Positions 352-18,969 of a stretch of 18,969 nucleotides of DNA are shown here, one piece after another. A program made the position numbers and the translations under genes. The notes under the pieces are model-generated. The model was not told where the DNA came from and did not search any database. It worked only from the letters and a program-made list of their open reading frames with translations. The DNA comes from Bugula neritina. Taxonomy: Eukaryota; Animalia; Bryozoa. Each line of letters starts with the position of its first letter. Position 1 is the first letter of the stretch. The stretch is from positions 1 through 18,969 of the forward strand of contig CAXIUT010000265.1 of NCBI GenBank assembly GCA_964035545.1, in the 5' to 3' direction.

Positions 352-789
352 TCAATGGATAATAGAGTTGATGGAATCTCTTATGAAGACAGAATGCTAT
401 ATTTTACTATTTCTACATAACTTTTTTAATTTATCCTTCCCACTGAAATCTTTAAACCAATCCACATTGATATTCTCTTTAGGCAATGCCACACTTACTG
501 GAGGCAACTTTTGACTATTCAAGAGTTTTGATTTCTTTGATCGATAAAACAACTTAGGTACTGCTTGGTTGCTGTCTACTCTTGACTTTCCTTTGAGTTT
601 ATCTTCACTTGCTGAGCGATGGAATGTAAACATGAGGGGATCTTTATCTGTGTGTTATTGTTTTTGGGAGTAGAGAGAAGACTATCTGTTTTATTTGGGA
701 ATGAAGAAATCAGAGGGAAGTTTGTTGGATAGAACTATTCTTGCTGCTGCTGTATTAAAGCGGCGCTAACTTTGATTCTTCTTTAGCAT
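352..789 (-). CDS. Hypothetical protein (~145 aa)
   Basis: ATG at 789 follows an AT-rich leader and is in frame with track ORF 397-633 when TAA/TAG are read as sense. First in-frame TGA is at 354-352. No homology recognised. Confidence 0.55.
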
Positions 790-981
790 TCTATTATGAT
801 TATAAAGAAGAATTTATTACTAGCTAGATAAAGTAAATTTGTTATTCATTCAGACAATTATAAAACAATCACATACCAACATTCATTTTATTAACCAATC
901 ACTGCTTTATCTTTGTTTTATTTATACTAGTTCAAAATAAATATAATTTCTAAATATGAAAATCACTATCAATGACTTCTA

Positions 982-2331
982 TCATATCATTATAAAAGAT
1001 GGGGTATTTATGGTTTGGGACTAATATTATAAGACATGTGGAGGGTAGAAACATCCCTTGTTGTTGTGTGGTGATAAAGTATGAACTTTTTTATTTGTTT
1101 ATAACTTGAATGACTCTATTATCTCCTCCACTTGATTATTACTATCAATTTTAATCATAATTGTTCCAGGAGGTCTTTATTTTAAGCCTTTTGCTATCTG
1201 AAATGGTAGTATAAAGTAGTTATTATTTGATTATGGAAGTGACAGTAGAGTACTTTTTAACTACTGCATTGAATCGACTGATAAAACATTAATATTTTTA
1301 AATTTTTTAAGTAAGTTTGTTAATTTTATGTTAGATAGGGCTTATACTATCACTGGTACTGTTTTATTTCTAAAATATTATACTAAATTTCTTAACTATT
1401 TTTATGTTTACAGGAAGGGGATGTTTTATTGGCAAAGATTGATGGTTGGATTGATTATTTTATTAAACAAAATGTATTTTTGTTGATTTTGTTGGTTATT
1501 TTATTATATTAATGGCCAATATGGCACTAGAGAGTATCCTGTTTATTTTATTGCCAAATTGATTTGATTATTAGCTTTACCTTTGAGTATTTAATAACTT
1601 TTATATGATTCCAACATATTCTATGCTATGTTTTTGGTCTATTACTGTTTGTTTATGATAATTATATTCTCAAATTTGTTTAGTTGATATTCTTTGTAGA
1701 AGTCGTTGTTCTAGATGAGAACAAGATCATATTTATTGATTTATTTCAAAGATTTTATGATACTAGCAGGCATATCTCTTCCTTCCTTCTTCATCAACTA
1801 CACATTTTTATTAGTCATATCTTAATATTCCCCACCGCCCCTAACCAAAACATCCAACGATCCTTTTGATTAACCTCCTCTCCCAACCAAGTAGTATCCT
1901 ACTGCTATTGTCAACATATTTACTCCTACATTTTCGTCAGGAATGATCAATACCTTCATATATGGACTAACCACACTTTATAGATAAGTGACTAGTGCTG
2001 GATATAAGATGCCTAGAGCTCTGACCATTTTAGTTTGGTAGGTGTTTTTATTTTTGCTAACTAGAACTTTCAAATGTGGATGTGTGGTTTGTATGTAGGT
2101 GTAGTTGGGATCTGAGTTGTCAAGGATGAGGTGTGAAGTTTAGTGTTTGAGGAAGATGTTTAGTGCTAAAGCAAATATCAATCCTATGATGACTGCTCCT
2201 ATGATTAAAATTCTGATGAGTTGTTTGTTTTTTTGTTATTTTCTTTGTTTTTTCCATTGAATGTCAAGATCTGAAAGCTAGTCAGTATTATGTTCGTCTG
2301 TAAATATTTTGAAATCTTTCTTTTTTGACAT
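982..2331 (-). CDS. Hypothetical single-pass (type II-like) membrane protein, 449 aa
   Basis: TGA-free frame from ATG 2331 to TGA 984-982. A basic N-terminus precedes the hydrophobic segment LIRILIIGAVIIGLIFALAL. No introns are needed. Confidence 0.75.
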
Positions 2332-2459: not shown

Positions 2460-3747
2460 TCACTGGTTGGTTGTGGTTGTGGTTGTTTTGACTGTTTTTG
2501 TAGTTGTAGTTGTTCCTGGTAGAGTTGTTGTGGTTGTTGATGTTGATGGCTGAGTCACAGTTGTTGTGCTTGGTTGAGTCACAGTTGTTGTCGTTGGTTG
2601 AGTTACTCCTGAAACAGTTGAAACTGGAGCTGTGTTGACTATTGGAACTGAAGCTGGTTGGACATTTGTGTTTGTTGTTGTTGCTGTTGTTGATGAGGGT
2701 ACAGTTGTTGGTTGAACTTCCACTGGTTGAATAGATGCTGGAGTCACACTCACTCCTGTAGTACCTGATGGAGTAGTAGTGGTAGTAGTTGATGTAGTTG
2801 AGGTAGTTGAGGTGGGTTGAGTTGTAGTGGTTGTTCCTGAAACTGGCACAGTGTTAGTATTAGTTGTTGATGTAGTAGTACCTGAAACTGGAACAGTATT
2901 AGTATTAGTAGTGGTTTCAGTTGTTGATGTAGTTGTTCCTGATACTGGTACAGTGTTGGTTGTCTCAGTGGTCGATGTAGTTGTTCCTGACACTGGGACA
3001 GTGTTTGTGTTAGTGTTAGTGTTGGTGTTGGTGTTTGTATTAGTAGTCTAAGTGGTTGAGGTGGTTGAAGTGGTGGAAGTGGTTGCTTCAGCAGCTGGAA
3101 CGCTAGCTGAAACATTAGCATTGGCATCAGCATCAACATTATTATTAATTCCTCCGATAACACCTAATCCCCAAAGTAATCCAAGAGTTAATAGGGCTAA
3201 TCCCAATAATCCGATTAATCCCCACACCCATTTGGGACAATGATCTTAAGCTGAGGCTTTAGCTGGTGCACTATATGAAGTATGAGCAACAGCTGGTTCA
3301 TGCACTGTAGTTCTTACTGGTTCTTGAGTTTTGACTGGTTCAACATAGGAAGTATGGACTGGTTCATGTCGTAATGATGAAGTTCTGACCTGCTTGACTT
3401 ATTAGTAAACTGGTTGAGGAGGTGGAACAGCCACTGGTTGTTACACTCTGAAATTAATAGATTATCTACCTATATGCATTGGAACTGGAAACAGCTTGAG
3501 TGGCATTACCGTGATTGAAACTGACTCTTGGAGGAGGAGCGTAAGAGGAAGAGGCTACATTATGAGTAGTGGAGGTGTATGCGGCTGGCGATGTGGACGT
3601 GTTGTAGGTGTTGTAGGAGGGTGAGGTGGTGGTGACGAAGGAGGGAGATGCGGCTTGGTAGTTGGATGATAGACTGTAATAGATGATGGTTTACGGTTGT
3701 CCGTATGAGGATTAGTTGTGGTTGAATCGAATTGATTGGTTGGCCAT
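2460..3747 (-). CDS. Thr-rich mucin-like single-pass membrane protein, 421 aa; join(3747..3470, 3447..2460)
   Basis: ATG at 3747. One 22-nt intron (GTAGATAATCTATTAATTTCAG, 3469-3448) restores the frame into track ORF 2460-2993. TM segment WVWGLIGLLGLALLTLGLLWGLGVIGG is followed by VPVSGTTTSTT repeats. TGA at 2462-2460. Confidence 0.85.
3448..3469 (-). other. 22-nt spliceosomal intron (GT-AG)
   Basis: GTAG...TTTCAG; its removal is required to keep the reading frame. Confidence 0.85.
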
Positions 3748-4090
3748 TGCTTTTCGAATAAATGAATAAAATATATTCAACTCAAATAAAGTCAAATTTA
3801 AAACTCTATCCAGTACTCATATCAAGAACCTTATTTTTAACATGATATATCTTCCAACTTCCTCTCTTGCTTATCACATTAACAACAAATATCACAATCA
3901 TTTGAAACAGCAAAGGCATTGATATCATAATCTCTAATGAATAAATTAAAAGCAGTTTAATGATTAGAAATAAACTATTTTTAATTTAATAATATTAATA
4001 TCATTTGAGTAGAGCTTTATATCTTTGACTAATTTATTAGTTTTAACTATTTGATTAATATCTTTGACTAATTTTAATTATAATTCAACA

Positions 4091-7061: not shown

Positions 7062-7988
7062 TCACTTTTGGGGAATAACGGCCATGTTGCAGATTCCGCA
7101 AGTTGATTTTCCACCAACAAGTCTAATGAATCCCTTTTCTCCCCAAGTAGCTCCCCAAGAGTTCTTGACCCACCAGTTGTCAGAGCTGACACCAACGAGG
7201 GTAACTCCGTGGTTAAGTCTGGTTCCGCAGTTGCTGAAAACTCCGGATTTGTAAGCTGACCAGTTGGAAGCATCAACAGCAACTGAGACGGGTTGGTTAG
7301 CAATTGAACTTGCCAATTTGTCGCAGCTCTTTATTTCAGTGTATCCTGAAACTTTGTAAGGTCCAGAATCCATCTTGCATGCTTGCTTGACAGCTTTGTA
7401 GGGGTAGTCATCTTCATGGACAATTCCCTTATCTTTAACGTATTTCAAAGCGTTGGTCATAAGACCTCCATTGCAGGCTTGGTTTCCGTATGATCCAGAG
7501 CAATCAACCAATTGGGATTCGGAGAAGCTTTCCAAAGATCCACCGTTAAGCTTGGAAAGACCTTCGAGACCTCCAGTGGTGGAGAAAGCCCAGCATGATC
7601 CGCATTGTCCTTGATTCTTGACTGGAGTGACGGCACCTTGAGAAACCCAATCAATATCGTTCATTTTAGCGCTTCCGGCATCAACGTTGCTGGCTTCACC
7701 GATGAATCCGAGGTATTGTGAAGAGAATTCTTCTTGAGTAAGGGCAGAGAACTGGTTAAGTCCTTGTTCGTAAGTTTGGGTCTTGTCGGCATTGTGAGCT
7801 TCGATTTTGGCGAAGTTTTCAAGGAAGACTCTTTCTCTGTAGGCATTTTCGAAGGTGGAGGTGTAGACAATTCCATGTCTGGCTTTCCAAGCATCGAACT
7901 CTGAGACTTTGTTGGAAGTCTGAGTGTTGAGGAGGAGGGCTGCAGCGCTGATAAAAGCGATGATGACAGCTAGTTGCTTTCCGTTCAT
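7062..7988 (-). CDS. Papain-family (C1A) cathepsin L-like cysteine protease precursor, 308 aa
   Basis: Signal peptide; I29-type prodomain (ERFNIN-like ENAYRERVFLENFAKIEAHN and GLNQF); catalytic motifs QGQCGSCWAF, NHGV and KNSWG. Confidence 0.97.
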   Translation of the reverse strand: MNGKQLAVIIAFISAAALLLNTQTSNKVSEFDAWKARHGIVYTSTFENAYRERVFLENFAKIEAHNADKTQTYEQGLNQFSALTQEEFSSQYLGFIGEASNVDAGSAKMNDIDWVSQGAVTPVKNQGQCGSCWAFSTTGGLEGLSKLNGGSLESFSESQLVDCSGSYGNQACNGGLMTNALKYVKDKGIVHEDDYPYKAVKQACKMDSGPYKVSGYTEIKSCDKLASSIANQPVSVAVDASNWSAYKSGVFSNCGTRLNHGVTLVGVSSDNWWVKNSWGATWGEKGFIRLVGGKSTCGICNMAVIPQK

Positions 7989-8616: not shown

Positions 8617-8695
8617 GGTTGGGGTTGGGGTTGGGGTTGGGGTTGGGGTTGGGGTTGGGGTTGGGGTTGGGGTTGGGGTTGGGGTTGGGGTTGGG
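8617..8695 (+). repeat. Internal telomere tract (GGGGTT)n, the right end of the 1-8695 mini-chromosome
   Basis: About 13 G4T2 repeats oriented as a right-hand telomere. Confidence 0.95.
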
Positions 8696-10432
8696 AATAG
8701 GGCGACAAAAAAATCACAATATTAGATGCCTTAATGTTTTAAAACAACCTAAGAAGTACTTTAGCATCCAGACTGGAAATAATATCGAACAGCAGAAGGA
8801 AAGAAATTTTACTATAATGCTATTACAAGAAAGTCATGCTGGCAACTACCCAATGAAGTCAAAGAATATCGAATTAAATTATAATAGAAGAGAAGGAAAG
8901 ATCGAGAATAGGGACGTGTTATAGAGTAGTAAGTATTATCTGAAGCTGAAGTTATTAGAAGGAAGCTGATGGCTTTGTTCAAGCAGAAACTTATTGGAGT
9001 GAATACAAAGTGGGATGCCTGTATGAAATTGTGTGAGGATGATGATAGATGGAAATTATTAAAGATAAGTGAAAAGAAGAAGCATTTTATTGATTATATA
9101 AATGAGTTGAAGAAGATAGGTGAGAAGTAGAAAAAGGCTAAAACTGAAGTGAATAAAATTCAATTTTTGAAGATGTTGAAATAGAATAAAAAATTGACTT
9201 CTGATTGCAAGATGCATAAAGTAGCTTATGATTTCATAGCAGATCCAAGATGGAGATTGCTTGATGATCATTAACGAGAAAATACATTTCAAAATTATAT
9301 GGATTAGTTACTTCAAAATTAAAAATAATAGGCCAATAAAGTCAAAAGATAAAATAGTTAAGCTTTCAGATTGATACTTTAAAAGGATAATATTAAGCAT
9401 AATTCAAGATGGGCAGATATCAGTAATTTCTATAAAGAAGAACCATCTTTTAAAGCTTTGCATCCTTATGATAGAATAAGTACCTTTTTGGATTATATTT
9501 TTTAATGCTAAAAACGATGGGAATAAGAACAAGCTAAAGAACGTAGATTACGTGAAAGAGTGAATCGAATTAACTATCGTAATCTTTTAAAATAAAAAAT
9601 ATCTACTGGAGATTTAAGTTACAAATCAAAATGGCGTGATTTTTTAGGAGATTTTAGAAATTAAAGAGCATTGATAGCCATGATGGACTCTTCTCAATTA
9701 GGTACCTCAGCACATTAAATATTTGAACATTTTATGTAAGATGTCCGTGAGAAGCATAAATTGATAAAAAGTTTAATAAAGCATCATTTTAAGAAAGTTA
9801 GCTTCAAAATGACTGAAACAGTTACAAGATAAGAGTTTATTTAAAAATTAAAAGATATGCCTTAGTACGTTTAACTTCCTGAACATATTAAAAATTATTT
9901 TTTTAACTATTTTTTGATGAAAATAAAAAATAAAAAATAGAATAAACAAGCTAGTGCTAAGAAGTCTTCTAAAAAGGAAAGAAAAATTATATTTAGAATT
10001 TTTTAACATCTACAAATCAAAGGATAACTTAAAAATAAGTATAGTATCGAAAGTCAAATGGATTATATTGAAAAAAATATGAAAGAAAGTGGCTTTTCAG
10101 TGACTCCTTAAACCATTTTTAAATATTATTTAGCTTTTCTTGAAAGTAATTAACAAGGTAGTAATCGAAAAGGATCAAAATAAAGATCTTCTGATAGTTC
10201 GAAAGAAGGAAAGTCTCGACATAAAAAGAGACATAAAGTCTAGGAGATAGAAGATACTAATGAATTGGCATCTTCTTTAAGAAAATTTACGATACCCTAG
10301 TTAGCTGAACTGAAGAAGCAGCAAATGAATTAATGCTAGGAGTAAGGAGAGATAAAAGATGATTCTGATGAAGTTAAAAAGAAAGTTAAGCATAAAAAGA
10401 AGAAGAGAAGTTCATCAAGTGATTCAGATTGA
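8696..10432 (+). CDS. PRP40: Prp40/PRPF40-like U1 snRNP-associated splicing factor (WW + FF domains), 5'-truncated
   Basis: The frame starts mid-WW1 (NRATKKSQYEMPE). WW2 is [26 protein letters not shown]. FF repeats include DDRWKLL, DPRWRLLDDHERENTF and GTSAHEIFEHF. The tail is K/S/E-rich with EEEGEI. TGA at 10430-10432. Confidence 0.9.
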
Positions 10433-10494
10433 TTAAAATTATGAAATATTTACTTAAATAAATATATAATTTTAAATATAATGACATAATCTTG

Positions 10495-10687
10495 ATAAAT
10501 ATAAAAGTAATAGGATACAAAATCACAAAGAAATTAGATGATGGTTAGGATTGTGAGAAGATCAGAAGATTCTAAGTTGAATATTCAATACGACTGAATC
10601 GTTGATTGAGTACTCATGCGTCTTCTAAAGATGACTTAGTTCGTACGCTAAGGTTATTTCATAGTATACTTCTAAGGTTATATGAGA
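10495..10687. repeat. Outer inverted repeat, left arm (shared 3' end of the micro-exon genes)
   Basis: Reverse complement of ~16026-16216 with only a few substitutions or indels. Confidence 0.9.
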
Positions 10688-12387
10688 TGATACGCATAGC
10701 GACTGAGATAAATGATTTTCATACTCTGGAGTAAATCAATGCTATACGACGGCATCGACTGACATTATTTGAAAGTTACGCTTTATCATTCAGTTTCATA
10801 CGGCTTTTTTAAAGGATCATTACACTAGGATAGAATAGGATATACAGCAGCAACTTGAATTAAAGAATAAATACTCTTAGTTATCGATATTTTACTCTCT
10901 GAATTGAATAAAATATTACCTTCACTGAGGTAAAAGAATTATTACTGGCTATGCTAGATATTTTGATACTCTTTATATTAAAAAACTTATACTTCTGAAT
11001 TTTATGACTTATACTAAGAGCATCAGCTATTTTTAAAAACTTTATACGGTTGCCTGTATTTTATTAACTTTGTACTCTTCATTAATAAAGAAAATACGTC
11101 GGCATCTAGGTTTAATAATTAAATACTCTTTAGTAAAAGGAATAATACGACTATTTTAATAAACAAATACGCTTCAATAGGATAGATGATACGGCTTCGA
11201 TCTTGATTAGATAAGAAATACGTCTTGATTAAGAATGTAGATACCAGCGTCCACTATAATAGAAAAGTCAGTACACTGAATAACTTAATAAATACAGCAC
11301 CAGCTATTACTAGACAATTTGATACCATTTCCAACTGAAAATTAAAAAGAAAATACTCTATAATAGATAAAGAAATACGTCCTCTGAAGTTAATAAGAAT
11401 ATACTGACTGAATGAAATTATTTTTACGCTTAATTATCTAAGATATACAGCTGAATAGTGAAATATTTTACTTTCTGAGATAAAATGTTTAATACTCTGG
11501 AATAAAAATAGTTGTACTCTCACTAATATTAGATATTTATTACTCTAGAATAATAAAAGCTTTACAACTACAATTATCTTATTAATACGCTTAAATTAAT
11601 AAAAATAAACGTTTTCAGTCTTAATAATCTTGTTCATACCTTTTCTGAAAGTAACAAAGTTCATACTCTTATATTAAAAGAAATAATACGACATCAGCTG
11701 TGATTAAATAACTTATACCAGCATCGGCTATAGTAAATATATTTATACACTAAATTGACTCAAATATACATCGTCTTCATAAAAAGATTAATACTCTAAA
11801 ATTATACATATTTTACGGCGAGATCTGCCTGAAAATTATTTTCAAAGTACGACTAATATTAAATCAAATCATACTCTTCATTAGTGGAATCATTACATCA
11901 CCTAAAATAAACTAAAATGTACTGTCTAAAATGAAAAATGTCATACCCTGCATTCAAATTAAATGTACAACTAGAGTTAGCTTATTTTATACACTTTGTA
12001 AATTAATAAAATACGGCAGCTTAAATAAAAAAGTCGATACCCTTAAGTAAAGGAATATTTACTTCTGACATTATGGGAAACTGTACCCTGAGATGAGAGA
12101 AATAATACATCTAAGGATGGGCTATGATATACCCTATGATAAAAAATGAGGTACAGCCTGAGTAGATAAAGATAGTACGGCTTCCTGGAATAGAAAAAAA
12201 ACTACTCCCTGGAGTAAAAGAAAGTATACGTCTGTTTAAATAAAGAAATTACTGTGAGCTTCTAAGTTTTAGATAAAAGATACTCTGAATAAAATCGATA
12301 TTACAAGGCTTTTTGAGAGAGATAATACCTCAATCCCATGGCGAGGGCGATAAGGACCAAAAGGGCGATAAGTTTGATGGATGACAT
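10614..12387 (-). CDS. Micro-exon gene B: 70 coding exons, 69 introns, secreted 106-aa protein
   Basis: Removing all ~20-22-nt GT..AG introns gives a stop-free 321-nt ORF: MSSIKLIALLVLIALAMGLSLKAHNGEAADEAAFDSDIADLANDSDAADVKKTENLMRKTLKDIGNAGALDADIEALNADSNPDALKTMKRIAASLDAVIAMQQDA*. Mean intron length is (1774-321)/69 = 21.1 nt. Confidence 0.88.
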
Positions 12388-13380
12388 AAGATTCAAAAGG
12401 AGGATAAATATATTCCAAAATAAGTGAAGAAATACTTGCTGAAAGATTATTGTCTGAGGTGTTAATTTCAACTCCTTATTTTTATCAGAGTTTATAAGAG
12501 CTCTTTTTGTGAGTTTCTAACTCTATCATCTTATACGTTAAGCTTAAACAATTGAACCAAAGAACTACACAGGCCAATAGCTTTCTTTTCATAAATGACT
12601 TGCATTTTATAAAGAACTTAACCATTATTGAGAAGAAAAAATCAATTAGAACCTTAAGAAAGACGGATAGACCTTCTCGAAGAGACTTATCTACTTTAGA
12701 CACCAAAACAAGCCTTCTGGTATTCAGATATTTGAAGATAAGTCTTTTGACTAAATGCTAAGTCACCGGAATATTTAGAAAAAACTTTTATTTTAACAAA
12801 AAGTAGTATTTTTTCTTTTAATATTCTTACTTTCTGTGTCTTTTAAAGACAGAAAAAAATTGTTAAATGATTTTTTCCCATTTTTTATTTGAAAACATCT
12901 ATTAAAGAATCTCTATTAAGAAAAAGAAAAAAATCATGAACGCGGTTAAGAATATTTCGATTTAAGGATACAAGAAAATTAGTATTATAGCTTTATTTAA
13001 AGATTATGAAGAGCTTAAAGTACTACTAGGTATTTTTTTTTTGTTTCAAAGATTCCAAAGATGACAAATAAATCGTAAAATAAAGTAAATTACTCTAATT
13101 ATTCTCTTTTAAGGATTACTTTAATGTTAAAATACTCTAAAAATGATTATTTATATATTTTTGTTTTAACATTTTTCTTTAAACTTCTCTTTTAAAGGCA
13201 CTTAAAACGAACTATGATTACGGTTCACTATATTCTAGCTTTAAAATACCTGTTAAACATAATTATTCAAAAATAAACAAGATTTTAATAGGCTAATGTC
13301 CTACTAGGTCAAGTTTTAGATATTCTAAAGTAACAAAAGTCATAAATCATAAAATAAAATGATAAAAATAGGGTTTTTTT
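12016..13380. repeat. Inner inverted repeat, left arm (1365 bp)
   Basis: Reverse complement of 13478-14842 (coordinate sum 26858, confirmed by the mirrored ORFs in the track). Spacer is 97 bp. Confidence 0.95.
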
Positions 13381-13477
13381 TGATCGAAATAAGAAGAGAA
13401 TTTCTTAATAGATGGTAATAGTTCAAAAATAAAAAGGAATACTTGATATTTATGGCATTTTAAATCCTTTTTACTTG

Positions 13478-14842
13478 AAAAAAACCCTATTTTTATCATT
13501 TTATTTTATGATTTATGACTTTTGTTACTTTAGAATATCTAAAACTTGACCTAGTAGGACATTAGCCTATTAAAATCTTGTTTATTTTTGAATAATTATG
13601 TTTAACAGGTATTTTAAAGCTAGAATATAGTGAACCGTAATCATAGTTCGTTTTAAGTGCCTTTAAAAGAGAAGTTTAAAGAAAAATGTTAAAACAAAAA
13701 TATATAAATAATCATTTTTAGAGTATTTTAACATTAAAGTAATCCTTAAAAGAGAATAATTAGAGTAATTTACTTTATTTTACGATTTATTTGTCATCTT
13801 TGGAATCTTTGAAACAAAAAAAAAATACCTAGTAGTACTTTAAGCTCTTCATAATCTTTAAATAAAGCTATAATACTAATTTTCTTGTATCCTTAAATCG
13901 AAATATTCTTAACCGCGTTCATGATTTTTTTCTTTTTCTTAATAGAGATTCTTTAATAGATGTTTTCAAATAAAAAATGGGAAAAAATCATTTAACAATT
14001 TTTTTCTGTCTTTAAAAGACACAGAAAGTAAGAATATTAAAAGAAAAAATACTACTTTTTGTTAAAATAAAAGTTTTTTCTAAATATTCCGGTGACTTAG
14101 CATTTAGTCAAAAGACTTATCTTCAAATATCTGAATACCAGAAGGCTTGTTTTGGTGTCTAAAGTAGATAAGTCTCTTCGAGAAGGTCTATCCGTCTTTC
14201 TTAAGGTTCTAATTGATTTTTTCTTCTCAATAATGGTTAAGTTCTTTATAAAATGCAAGTCATTTATGAAAAGAAAGCTATTGGCCTGTGTAGTTCTTTG
14301 GTTCAATTGTTTAAGCTTAACGTATAAGATGATAGAGTTAGAAACTCACAAAAAGAGCTCTTATAAACTCTGATAAAAATAAGGAGTTGAAATTAACACC
14401 TCAGACAATAATCTTTCAGCAAGTATTTCTTCACTTATTTTGGAATATATTTATCCTCCTTTTGAATCTTATGTCATCCATCAAACTTATCGCCCTTTTG
14501 GTCCTTATCGCCCTCGCCATGGGATTGAGGTATTATCTCTCTCAAAAAGCCTTGTAATATCGATTTTATTCAGAGTATCTTTTATCTAAAACTTAGAAGC
14601 TCACAGTAATTTCTTTATTTAAACAGACGTATACTTTCTTTTACTCCAGGGAGTAGTTTTTTTTCTATTCCAGGAAGCCGTACTATCTTTATCTACTCAG
14701 GCTGTACCTCATTTTTTATCATAGGGTATATCATAGCCCATCCTTAGATGTATTATTTCTCTCATCTCAGGGTACAGTTTCCCATAATGTCAGAAGTAAA
14801 TATTCCTTTACTTAAGGGTATCGACTTTTTTATTTAAGCTGC
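13478..14842. repeat. Inner inverted repeat, right arm (1365 bp)
   Basis: Mirror of 12016-13380. Contains ~990 bp of upstream DNA plus exons 1-13 of the micro-exon gene. Confidence 0.95.
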
Positions 14843-16099
14843 TGGTATATATCAAATAATTTTAGCCAGTATGAATTTAATAACCAAGATGTATGATATT
14901 TTTGATATTTAAGGGTATAAAATATGTTACTTTAGCCGGTATAATTTTTTATATTTTAGCCGGAGCCGTATGATTAGAATAATTGAAGGCAGCTCTCGGT
15001 ATGAGATCCTATAAAGCTAGCTGATGACGTATGATAGATGAGAAATTAGAGTATTGAAGGTTTGACTTAGATGCTGGTATTAATTAGATAAGAATAGATG
15101 GTATTATAAAAGTTATTTAGCCTAAGTATTAGTTATTTGAATATAGTGTACTAAAATAGTAATTGAAGTCGTTCTTTATTGACTAATTTCAGAGTTAAAA
15201 TAAACTTATTCAGAAGTATTTTATTTTCTACTAAGGGTTTTTTGTATTTTACTTAGTCGTAAATATCAAGTCTATTAAGTGTAAAACTATTGAAATTTTA
15301 GTTGACGAAACTGTTGATGCCGTAAAATTGTTAATTATTAAGAGTACTTAGTCAATAAAGATAGTCGTATTTATTAATTTAAACAAAGAGTATTCTATAT
15401 TTTATTTAGTTGCTGGCGTATTCTTTTAACAACAAAGGGTATATTATTATTTAGTTTTAGATTCTGACAAAGTATTTTTACTTCTAAGTGAGGCCGTATT
15501 TATATATCAAAAAAGAATGTATGATTAATTTTATTTAGGGTATATCTATTTTTGAGGAAGAAGTACTTATAAAATAACATCAGCTCGTCACAGTATATTT
15601 CAAAATAAGTCTAGGCTGTAACTTTATATTTATTTTAGAATGTGGACAGTATTGATTGATTTATCATAGCTGTCAGTATAAATTTATTGATTGAAGAGCG
15701 TATTAAATCAATCACAAAGCTGAAGTATTCATATTTCTATTAAGTTCCGTATTTGTTTTATCATATCAGTCCGTATTAAACCAATTATCTCAGAAAGTAT
15801 TCCCCTATTTACAGCAGAAAGTATAAATCATCTAAATGTAGTGAAAGTTTCATTTTGTTAATCAAGAGTATACTATCTTTAACCCAGAATGTATTAGTCT
15901 ATCTAATATAGTCGTCGTATATCATCTTTTAATTCAAGGGTATTGTCTTTGTCATTCAGCTGACCGTATTAAATCAATAACCCAGTCATCAGTATCAATC
16001 TTAGTCATCTTTAGAGGCTAGTAATTCTCATATAACCTTAGAAGTATACTATGAAATAACCTTAGCGTACGAACTAAGTCATCTTTAGAAGACGCATGA
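14471..16099 (+). CDS. Micro-exon gene A: 64 coding exons, 63 introns, secreted 102-aa protein
   Basis: Removing all ~20-23-nt GT..AG introns gives a 309-nt ORF: MSSIKLIALLVLIALAMGLSLKAHNGEAADEAAANAAGAAALADDNADA[TAA=E]FKVFDETVDAIIAGDSDKANELVTANVDTVKPEFLQKMKKFVADLIKAKQDA*. Mean intron length is (1629-309)/63 = 21.0 nt. Confidence 0.88.
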
Positions 16100-16216
16100 G
16101 TACTCAATCAACGATTCAGTCGTATTGAATATTCAACTTAGAACCTTCTGATCTTCTCACAATCCTAACCATCATCTAATTTCTTTGATTTTGTATCCTA
16201 TTATTTTTATATTTAT
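16026..16216. repeat. Outer inverted repeat, right arm
   Basis: Near-identical reverse complement of 10495-10687. Covers the last exons, the stop codon and the 3' UTR. Confidence 0.9.
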
Positions 16217-16303
16217 ATTAATTATCAATATCAATGATCAAATCTCTTAAAATAATAACAAAAAGATATGATTTAAAAAGAAATAAATAAGTAGAAAGTA
16301 AAA

Positions 16304-17593: not shown

Positions 17594-17662
17594 GATTGAT
17601 TCTATATTATAAATATCAATATTAAATTGAAGTATTAGAGAAACAACTATTTTAATTAATGT

Positions 17663-18878
17663 GATAATGATGATATAAAGTATTGATTGATTGAAGATAG
17701 ATAGTTGGTATATCTCTTAATAACTATATTATTTCTTGATACAACTGACAATACTGAATGATAATGATGATAAAAGTATTGATTGATTGAAGATAGATAG
17801 TTGGTATATCTCTTAATAACTATATTATTTCTTGATACAACTGACAATACTGAATGATAATGATGATAAAAGTATTGATTGATTGAAGATAGATAGTTGG
17901 TATATCTCTTAATAACTATATTATTTCTTGATACAACTGACAATACTGAATGATAATGATGATAAAAGTATTGATTGATTGAAGATAGATAGTTGGTATA
18001 TCTCTTAATAACTATATTATTTCTTGATACAACTGACAATACTGAATGATAATGATGATAAAAGTATTGATTGATTGAAGATAGATAGTTGGTATATCTC
18101 TTAATAACTATATTATTTCTTGATACAACTGACAATACTGAATGATAATGATGATAAAAGTATTGATTGATTGAAGATAGATAGTTGGTATATCTCTTAA
18201 TAACTATATTATTTCTTGATACAACTGACAATACTGAATGATAATGATGATAAAAGTATTGATTGATTGAAGATAGATAGTTGGTATATCTCTTAATAAC
18301 TATATTATTTCTTGATACAACTGACAATACTGAATGATAATGATGATAAAAGTATTGATTGATTGAAGATAGATAGTTGGTATATCTCTTAATAACTATA
18401 TTATTTCTTGATACAACTGACAATACTGAATGATAATGATGATAAAAGTATTGATTGATTGAAGATAGATAGTTGGTATATCTCTTAATAACTATATTAT
18501 TTCTTGATACAACTGACAATACTGAATGATAATGATGATAAAAGTATTGATTGATTGAAGATAGATAGTTGGTATATCTCTTAATAACTATATTATTTCT
18601 TGATACAACTGACAATACTGAATGATAATGATGATAAAAGTATTGATTGATTGAAGATAGATAGTTGGTATATCTCTTAATAACTATATTATTTCTTGAT
18701 ACAACTGACAATACTGAATGATAATGATGATAAAAGTATTGATTGATTGAAGATAGATAGTTGGTATATCTCTTAATAACTATATTATTTCTTGATACAA
18801 CTGACAATACTGAATGATAATGATGATAAAAGTATTGATTGATTGAAGATAGATAGTTGGTATATCTCTTAATAACTA
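17663..18878 (+). repeat. Subtelomeric 96-bp tandem array, ~12.7 near-identical copies
   Basis: Period is 96 (sequence lines 17701, 18181 and 18661 are identical). The array runs directly into the telomere. Confidence 0.97.
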
Positions 18879-18969
18879 GGGGTTGGGGTTGGGGTTGGGG
18901 TTGGGGTTGGGGTTGGGGTTGGGGTTGGGGTTGGGGTTGGGGTTGGGGTTGGGTGGGGTTGGGGTTGGG
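18879..18969 (+). repeat. Right telomere (GGGGTT)n
   Basis: G4T2 repeats to the end of the window. Confidence 0.98.

Follow-up and report, generated by a model that had tools for sequence, protein, structure and literature searches.

The stretch analysed here (the window, 18,969 bases; contig CAXIUT010000265.1 of the Bugula neritina assembly GCA_964035545.1) carries on its minus strand, at 10572-12387, an array of very short GT..AG-bounded units and micro-exons, referred to as gene B, which stands head to head with a paralogous array on the plus strand, gene A. The initial annotation, made from the letters of the sequence, had described gene B as a hyper-fragmented gene with 69 introns, 70 coding exons, 25 one-nucleotide exons, and a product of 106 amino acids (aa) ending in QDA-TGA, and these figures were reproduced by a dynamic-programming parse that was blind to the reading frame and whose inputs were the GT..AG ends, a length of 19-25 nucleotides (nt), and the A+T content. 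The parse divided the array and its flanking units into 72 exons and 71 introns, all 71 of the latter with a GT 5′ end and an AG 3′ end and with lengths of 20 nt (15 introns), 21 nt (39), or 22 nt (17); 69 lie upstream of the stop codon and two downstream. One nucleotide makes up the whole of 25 exons and two nucleotides the whole of another 13 (38 of 72 exons), the others measuring 3-12 nt except for a first coding exon of 59 nt. Introns account for 1493 of the 1816 nt of the region. When joined, the exons form a 321-nt coding sequence (CDS) of 106 codons, with its ATG at 12387 and its TGA at 10616-10614, which ends in QDA-TGA and has no TAA, no TAG, and no TGA inside the frame.

Starting from the 5′ end, the first coding exon (12329..12387, minus strand) encodes the initial methionine and a hydrophobic, signal-peptide-like N-terminus, and matches exon 1 of gene A (14471-14529) exactly. 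It is followed by the 69 GTA..AG introns of 20-22 nt, which separate micro-exons of 1-12 nt (10625..12328, minus strand) and whose assignment draws on the parse, sequence shuffles, intron phase, consensus, and codon usage presented below. The central cassette specific to gene B (10688..12015, minus strand) holds 53 of these introns and shows no DNA similarity to gene A. The TGA stop codon is located at 10614..10616 (minus strand), and a second in-frame TGA follows four codons on in the spliced reading. Immediately past the stop, at 10572..10613 on the same strand, two more 20-nt GTA..AG units are situated 2 nt apart (10613-10594 and 10591-10572), the second being in phase 2 if counted in the coding frame, and gene A carries a matching post-stop pair of 20-nt GTA..AG units (16100-16141). 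As predicted from their sequence, the post-stop units of both genes are probably introns in the 3′ untranslated region (UTR).

A chance origin of the gene B array is excluded because a strict count of GTA-N-AG units of 20-22 nt gave 69 in the gene B region and 5 on the opposite strand, while 300 shuffles that preserved dinucleotides gave 7.3 ± 2.3 (maximum 14). Nor is the array a sequence repeat, since Tandem Repeats Finder reported no repeat in it and the mean pairwise identity of its introns (0.56) was near the level of interior-shuffled controls (0.54). No correlation was found between intron length and the length of the neighbouring exon.

The coding argument is carried by the phase and codon tests, which are much stronger than the openness of the frame. 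With a codon table for the ciliate to which the window belongs (see below), built from its HSP70, cathepsin, and CCT genes, the codon log-likelihood of spliced gene B was +66 bits in frame 0 and -77 and -93 bits in the other frames (z 8.5 versus shuffles), while the corresponding value for gene A was +60 bits. Among the 117 distinct introns of genes A and B, 51 are in phase 0, 65 in phase 1, and a single one, the first intron, in phase 2; if introns occurred at each flanking dinucleotide as often as they do in phases 0 and 1, about 83 phase-2 introns would be expected, so that flanking nucleotides fail to account for the scarcity. The 53 introns of the B-specific cassette are 24 of phase 0 and 29 of phase 1, phase 2 being unrepresented, an outcome with a probability of (2/3)^53, about 5e-10, under random phases. 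Furthermore, every one-nucleotide exon is a first codon position, and phase-0 and phase-1 introns flank the same first base beyond chance (odds ratio 7.2, p = 1e-7). Because a parser blind to the frame still yields intron positions that respect it, the reading frame must be real. The phase rule points to codon-registered intron gain or to selection via the translation of incompletely spliced RNA. Later introns of peritrich genes have been reported to avoid phase 2 (PMC13685798), which may be a trace of hyper-fragmented genes in existing annotations.

Evidence on splicing was obtained from contigs of public sequencing runs aligned onto positions 10350-16300. A contig of 194 nt from run X23 matches exon 1 with its letters 1-58, and its remaining 136 letters match nowhere on 10350-16300. 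The 30 letters compared after exon 1 correspond exactly to positions 59-88 of the predicted messenger RNA (mRNA) and are absent, in this spliced form, from the genomic window; they span nine predicted junctions, with exons of 4, 1, 9, 2, 3, 6, 3, 1, and 2 nt, including two one-nucleotide exons that are correctly joined. The contig demonstrates, in a probable RNA run, the RNA-level removal of the first nine introns common to genes A and B. To judge from their sequence, the 53 B-specific introns would be spliced likewise. The index of sequence words is blind to spliced mRNA because every 31-mer of the genomic array includes intron sequence; the RNA-labelled runs of the host species held none of the genomic words, which is expected if the gene is spliced or the ciliate absent and hence uninformative. 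Run X27 gave no contig on 10350-16300.

At the DNA level, contigs of runs X3 and X4, which are labelled with two other hosts, carry the array unspliced, at 100% identity and with no joints, over 10350-11231, 11343-11713, 11847-11997 (B-specific) and 12041-12784 (junction region). The window is one entire contig of the 216-Mb assembly and is bounded by telomere repeats, (CCCCAA)n at the left contig end (1..63) and (GGGGTT)n at the right (18880..18969); these mark it as a whole macronuclear chromosome, about 19 kb long. As the DNA runs are unspliced without joints and the chromosome is telomere-capped, the units are removed from RNA and not from DNA. The alternative, that the 21-nt units are germline-limited internal eliminated sequences cut from the DNA and that the contig is micronuclear, draws on the fact that ciliates remove thousands of short elements from coding DNA and on the finding of the joined form in one public run whose RNA label is a guess. 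It is largely refuted, and we regard it as most improbable, given that telomeres at both ends denote a finished macronuclear chromosome, that X3 and X4 hold the array without joints, and that the units resemble ordinary introns in their GTA..AG ends and branch-point-like A and lack TA-bounded ends. Contigs of DNA runs with other host labels also match the arrays perfectly up to 10842, 11104, 11343, 14600, 15635, 15645, and 16153 and then pass into unrelated sequence; these divergence points could reflect further paralogs, alleles of those strains that are mosaics with other cassettes, or low-coverage graph breaks.

The assembly consists of an animal-like host (large contigs, multi-exon genes, standard code, and long introns) and many small ciliate chromosomes, and many of the small contigs contain genes with in-frame TAA and TAG. 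An HSP70 gene on one such contig has 14 in-frame TAA/TAG codons, 12 of them within a pairwise alignment to another HSP70, where 8 of the 12 sit opposite Glu, several in conserved motifs. TGA terminates both this HSP70 gene and the cathepsin L gene of the window, and the sole TGA within a match to Hsp60 falls inside a 21-nt intron. Based on these three observations, the code of the ciliate is of the peritrich type, NCBI table 30, with UAA/UAG read as Glu and UGA as the only stop. The genes examined lend no support to UGA being read also as Trp. The window belongs to a ciliate co-sequenced with the host, although the code by itself does not prove peritrich identity.

The same ciliate provided ordinary genes for comparison. 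Its CCT and Hsp60 genes have 1-2 introns each, and the seven ordinary introns examined measure 20-21 nt, start with GTA, and end with TAG, one of them being in phase 2. Six of the seven are 20 nt long (3n+2) and one is 21 nt, whereas the mode in the array is 21 nt (3n). The consensus of the 117 distinct array introns shows GTA in 96%, T at +4 in 70%, and A at -7 in 72%, and G never precedes the final AG. The array introns are the same kind as the ordinary tiny introns of this ciliate, apart from their modal length and density. The difference in density is large, with 69 introns in 321 nt (about 215 per kb CDS) in gene B compared to roughly one per kb in the ordinary genes, i.e., about 200 times as many. 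In 163 kb of sampled small contigs, the length histogram of GTA..AG candidates showed no clear peak, ordinary introns being too sparse. Approximately 190 kb of other small contigs were sampled and contained no array of more than 10 introns and one mini-array only, on contig L018. This small micro-exon gene (~634-1120, plus strand) has a signal-peptide-like first exon, a run of eight introns (20-24 nt) interrupted by exons of 4, 1, 9, 2, 1, 11, and 1 nt, a low-complexity exon, and a further five introns; a single candidate chain was found there, with an in-frame TGA right past exon 1, which leaves its parse, start, or gene integrity in doubt. The matches listed in whole-assembly pattern scans were dominated by 22-24-bp satellites of the large host contigs.

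Gene A (14471..16099, plus strand) is hyper-fragmented as well, with 63 CDS introns, a 102-aa product, and one in-frame TAA (Glu). The two genes share the arms of an inverted repeat, the left arm (12016..13380) comprising the upstream region, exon 1, and first 13 introns of gene B, and the right arm (13478..14842) the same elements for gene A; the arms are 100% identical over 1365 nt and separated by a spacer of 97 nt, at whose edges contigs of independent DNA runs end. At the other end, a 3′ block (10495..10687, minus strand) comprising the final coding introns, the stop codon, and the 3′ UTR is 98% identical to gene A 16026-16216. No DNA similarity between the genes was found between the palindrome arms and the 3′ blocks, and the middle portions of the two proteins give a weak alignment (z 2.2, p 0.03). 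The initial annotation had noted that about 54 introns of the unique part (53 in the parse) bear no obvious likeness to those of gene A, and this held, their identity of 0.45-0.76 being at the background level (0.55 ± 0.08) and no closer at coinciding positions. Given the same weak alignment (z 2.2), intron positions of the two genes coincide 25 times compared to 17.7 expected (p = 0.005). This bears on the suggestion that the fragmented state is maintained or regenerated while the coding sequence diverges, a question that can be answered in part, since coincidence beyond chance favours inheritance with turnover. The simplest history, provisional because the protein alignment is weak, would involve an old fragmented ancestor, turnover of intron sequences with some gain and loss, and a recent conversion of the ends.

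The arrangement of the arms also raises the question of whether the A/B pair is an assembly artefact, that is, a fold-back or chimeric palindrome in which gene B is no separate locus. The inverted repeat is perfect over its whole length with a short spacer, and amplified low-input libraries can make palindromes. Past the arms, however, the two sides differ fully for about 1.3 kb and then reconverge at 98%, which a fold-back cannot do, and independent short-read contigs of runs with two other host labels extend over B-specific sequence and the junction region at 100% identity. We therefore consider an artefact extremely unlikely.

Taken together, these data make it very probable that gene B, on a 19-kb macronuclear chromosome of a co-assembled ciliate, is a real protein-coding nuclear gene that is spliced as proposed; the original description of a hyper-fragmented, spliced, protein-coding gene is supported by the X23 junctions, codon usage, intron phase, the ordinary introns of the organism, and the somatic nature of the chromosome. 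Several points weigh against it. Genes A and B are 100% identical over the part covered by the X23 contig, in which 30 of the 136 letters beyond exon 1 were compared; the RNA type of X23 is a guess, the run is labelled with another organism, and the contig has one mismatch in exon 1 and may derive from a different strain. No B-specific transcript occurred among the contigs aligned on 10350-16300, and scans of metagenome contigs for spliced words, covering the common 5′ part and the 3′ end across the post-stop introns, found none. Two introns directly past a stop codon are unusual, and a faulty assembly could in principle underlie the perfect 1365-bp palindrome. Finally, the clean open reading frames had been presented as strong validation: the stop-free frame is real, but it is weaker evidence of coding than claimed because UGA is the only stop and 28% of shuffles are TGA-free (1.2% are free of all three stops).

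Some of these points would also fit a silent or decaying duplicate, in which case only gene A or another paralog would be expressed and gene B would be a relic with its ends kept by gene conversion. The RNA evidence cannot separate A from B, gene B has been homogenised with gene A over the 5′ 1365 nt and the 3′ 190 nt, and an open frame is not rare in a one-stop code. Yet all 53 B-specific introns (53/53) keep their GTA..AG ends, measure 20-22 nt, and are in phase 0 or 1, the frame is free of TAA, TAG, and TGA with codon usage as good as that of gene A, the promoter region and first exon are identical to those of gene A, and samples from two other hosts carry the B sequence unchanged. Such a relic is thus improbable, and an expressed gene B is preferred.

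According to this preferred reading, a pre-mRNA of about 1.9 kb would be transcribed from one arm of the 1365-bp palindrome. Its 69 coding-region introns, and probably the two past the stop, would belong to an ordinary spliceosomal class of tiny introns (GTA...A(-7)...AG, 20-22 nt) and would be removed by intron definition. The AG of an intron often lies 1-2 nt from the next GTA, so that neighbouring introns could not be bound together and would be removed in successive rounds, in a manner resembling recursive splicing. This stepwise order is proposed because an AG-N-GTA junction cannot hold a 3′-site complex and a U1-type 5′-site complex at once, judging by the known footprints of such complexes. 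The resulting mRNA of about 0.4 kb would encode a 106-aa precursor, probably composed of a signal peptide and a helical secreted protein of about 85 aa, as the sequence suggests. The product is acidic (isoelectric point about 4.3), Cys-free, and Ala/Asp-rich, and its N-terminus is hydrophobic and signal-peptide-like by inspection. Genes A and B would be diverged paralogs whose ends have been homogenised by gene conversion within the inverted repeat and whose fragmented middles were inherited and then altered by intron turnover.

The phase rule also invites the broader view that a frame-aware process, either codon-registered intron gain or translation-coupled selection on partly spliced RNAs in a one-stop code where 3n introns can be read through, builds and maintains such genes and that hyper-fragmentation is a functional device for secreted proteins rather than a neutral intron runaway. 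We put this forward tentatively, as a possibility that the odds do not favour; combinatorial isoforms and splicing-gated expression would be examples of such a device. Still less likely is the specific proposal that fragmentation itself is the function of gene B, either by generating isoforms of a secreted protein combinatorially or by timing or sensing splicing capacity. A retained 21-nt intron would add seven residues in frame, this length is modal in the arrays (39 of 71 introns) and 20 nt is the length of 6 of the 7 ordinary introns, and retention of 37 of the 39 3n introns of gene B would bring in no stop. Like the products of schistosome micro-exon genes (PMC10526429), that of gene B is secreted-like. 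On the other hand, the sole RNA-like contig is fully spliced over nine junctions, and about 5 of the 39 retained introns would be expected to contain a TGA by composition, an estimate from which the observed 2 of 39 is no significant depletion.

Apart from genes A and B, the window includes a cathepsin L-like cysteine protease gene on the minus strand (7062-7988), identified by domain matches (I29 propeptide and Peptidase_C1), intron-free and ending in TGA. Of its words, 0.99-1.00 were present in DNA runs labelled with three different organisms, and weak RNA-level matches to them came from marine metatranscriptomes. A Thr-rich, mucin-like open frame is located at 2460-3780 (minus strand), a microsatellite of alternating G and T at 8619-8700 reads as a Gly-Leu run, and a subtelomeric minisatellite at 17656-18807 holds an open frame with at least twelve copies of a unit of about 31 aa. 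At the opposite end, a short tandem repeat with units of GAAATCATGAATCAT type adjoins the left telomere at 64-130. No RNA family was found within the window with Rfam.

If gene B is spliced as predicted, it sets a new lower limit for the spliceosome, with dozens of consecutive minimal introns and single-nucleotide exons, and neither exon definition nor independent intron definition can apply because neighbouring splice sites overlap. As a second independent cassette with the same rules and unrelated introns, gene B would then show that the pattern belongs to the system rather than to a single locus. The restriction to phases 0 and 1 and the first-position one-nucleotide exons offer a testable handle on intron gain and retention. 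Standard gene finders and RNA-seq aligners are blind to such genes, so that a class of small secreted proteins is probably absent from ciliate annotations. A literature search for precedents found no description of such hyper-fragmented genes.

Gene B can be compared to several known systems, among them the tiny spliceosomal introns of ciliates, which measure about 25 nt in Paramecium and 15-16 nt in Stentor and Blepharisma. Gene B shares with them the GT..AG ends, narrow length range, A-rich branch region near the 3′ end, and, as proposed, removal by intron definition, and differs in its density of about 215 introns per kb, its exons of mostly 1-3 nt, and the near absence of phase 2. Three peritrichs likewise have narrow intron length distributions, and the maximum in any ciliate surveyed is 2.87 introns per kb CDS (PMC13685798), a value that gene B exceeds by roughly two orders of magnitude. 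Introners, in turn, are transposon-like elements that seed many near-identical introns. Gene B resembles them in its massive intron gain, but its introns are about as alike as shuffled controls.

The micro-exon genes (MEGs) of Schistosoma, with symmetric exons of 3-81 bp (multiples of three) and introns of up to 5 kb (PMC10526429), are similar to gene B, whose product is predicted to be secreted and whose longer first exon is signal-peptide-like by inspection, in encoding small secreted proteins with a signal peptide in a longer first exon and very short coding exons thereafter, and to the A/B pair in forming paralog families with variable middles. In contrast, the exons of gene B go down to 1 nt and are mostly not multiples of three, its introns measure 20-22 nt, and the organisms are unrelated. 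Correct splicing of a one-nucleotide exon between two spliceosomal introns has been described in Arabidopsis (PMC4674806) and in CYP621A of Fusarium (PMC12940212); there, each gene has one exceptional exon of this kind, whereas gene B has 25 in 106 codons, all at first positions. In the recursive splicing of long Drosophila introns, a 3′ splice site is juxtaposed to a 5′ site (AG|GT) at ratchet points (PMC8605326), which resemble the AG-N-GTA junctions of gene B in that removal would have to be stepwise. Ratchet points, however, lie in very long introns and leave no exon, while each step in gene B would remove a minimal intron and leave 1-12 coding nt. Gene B is an extreme new variant of the tiny-intron, micro-exon architecture.

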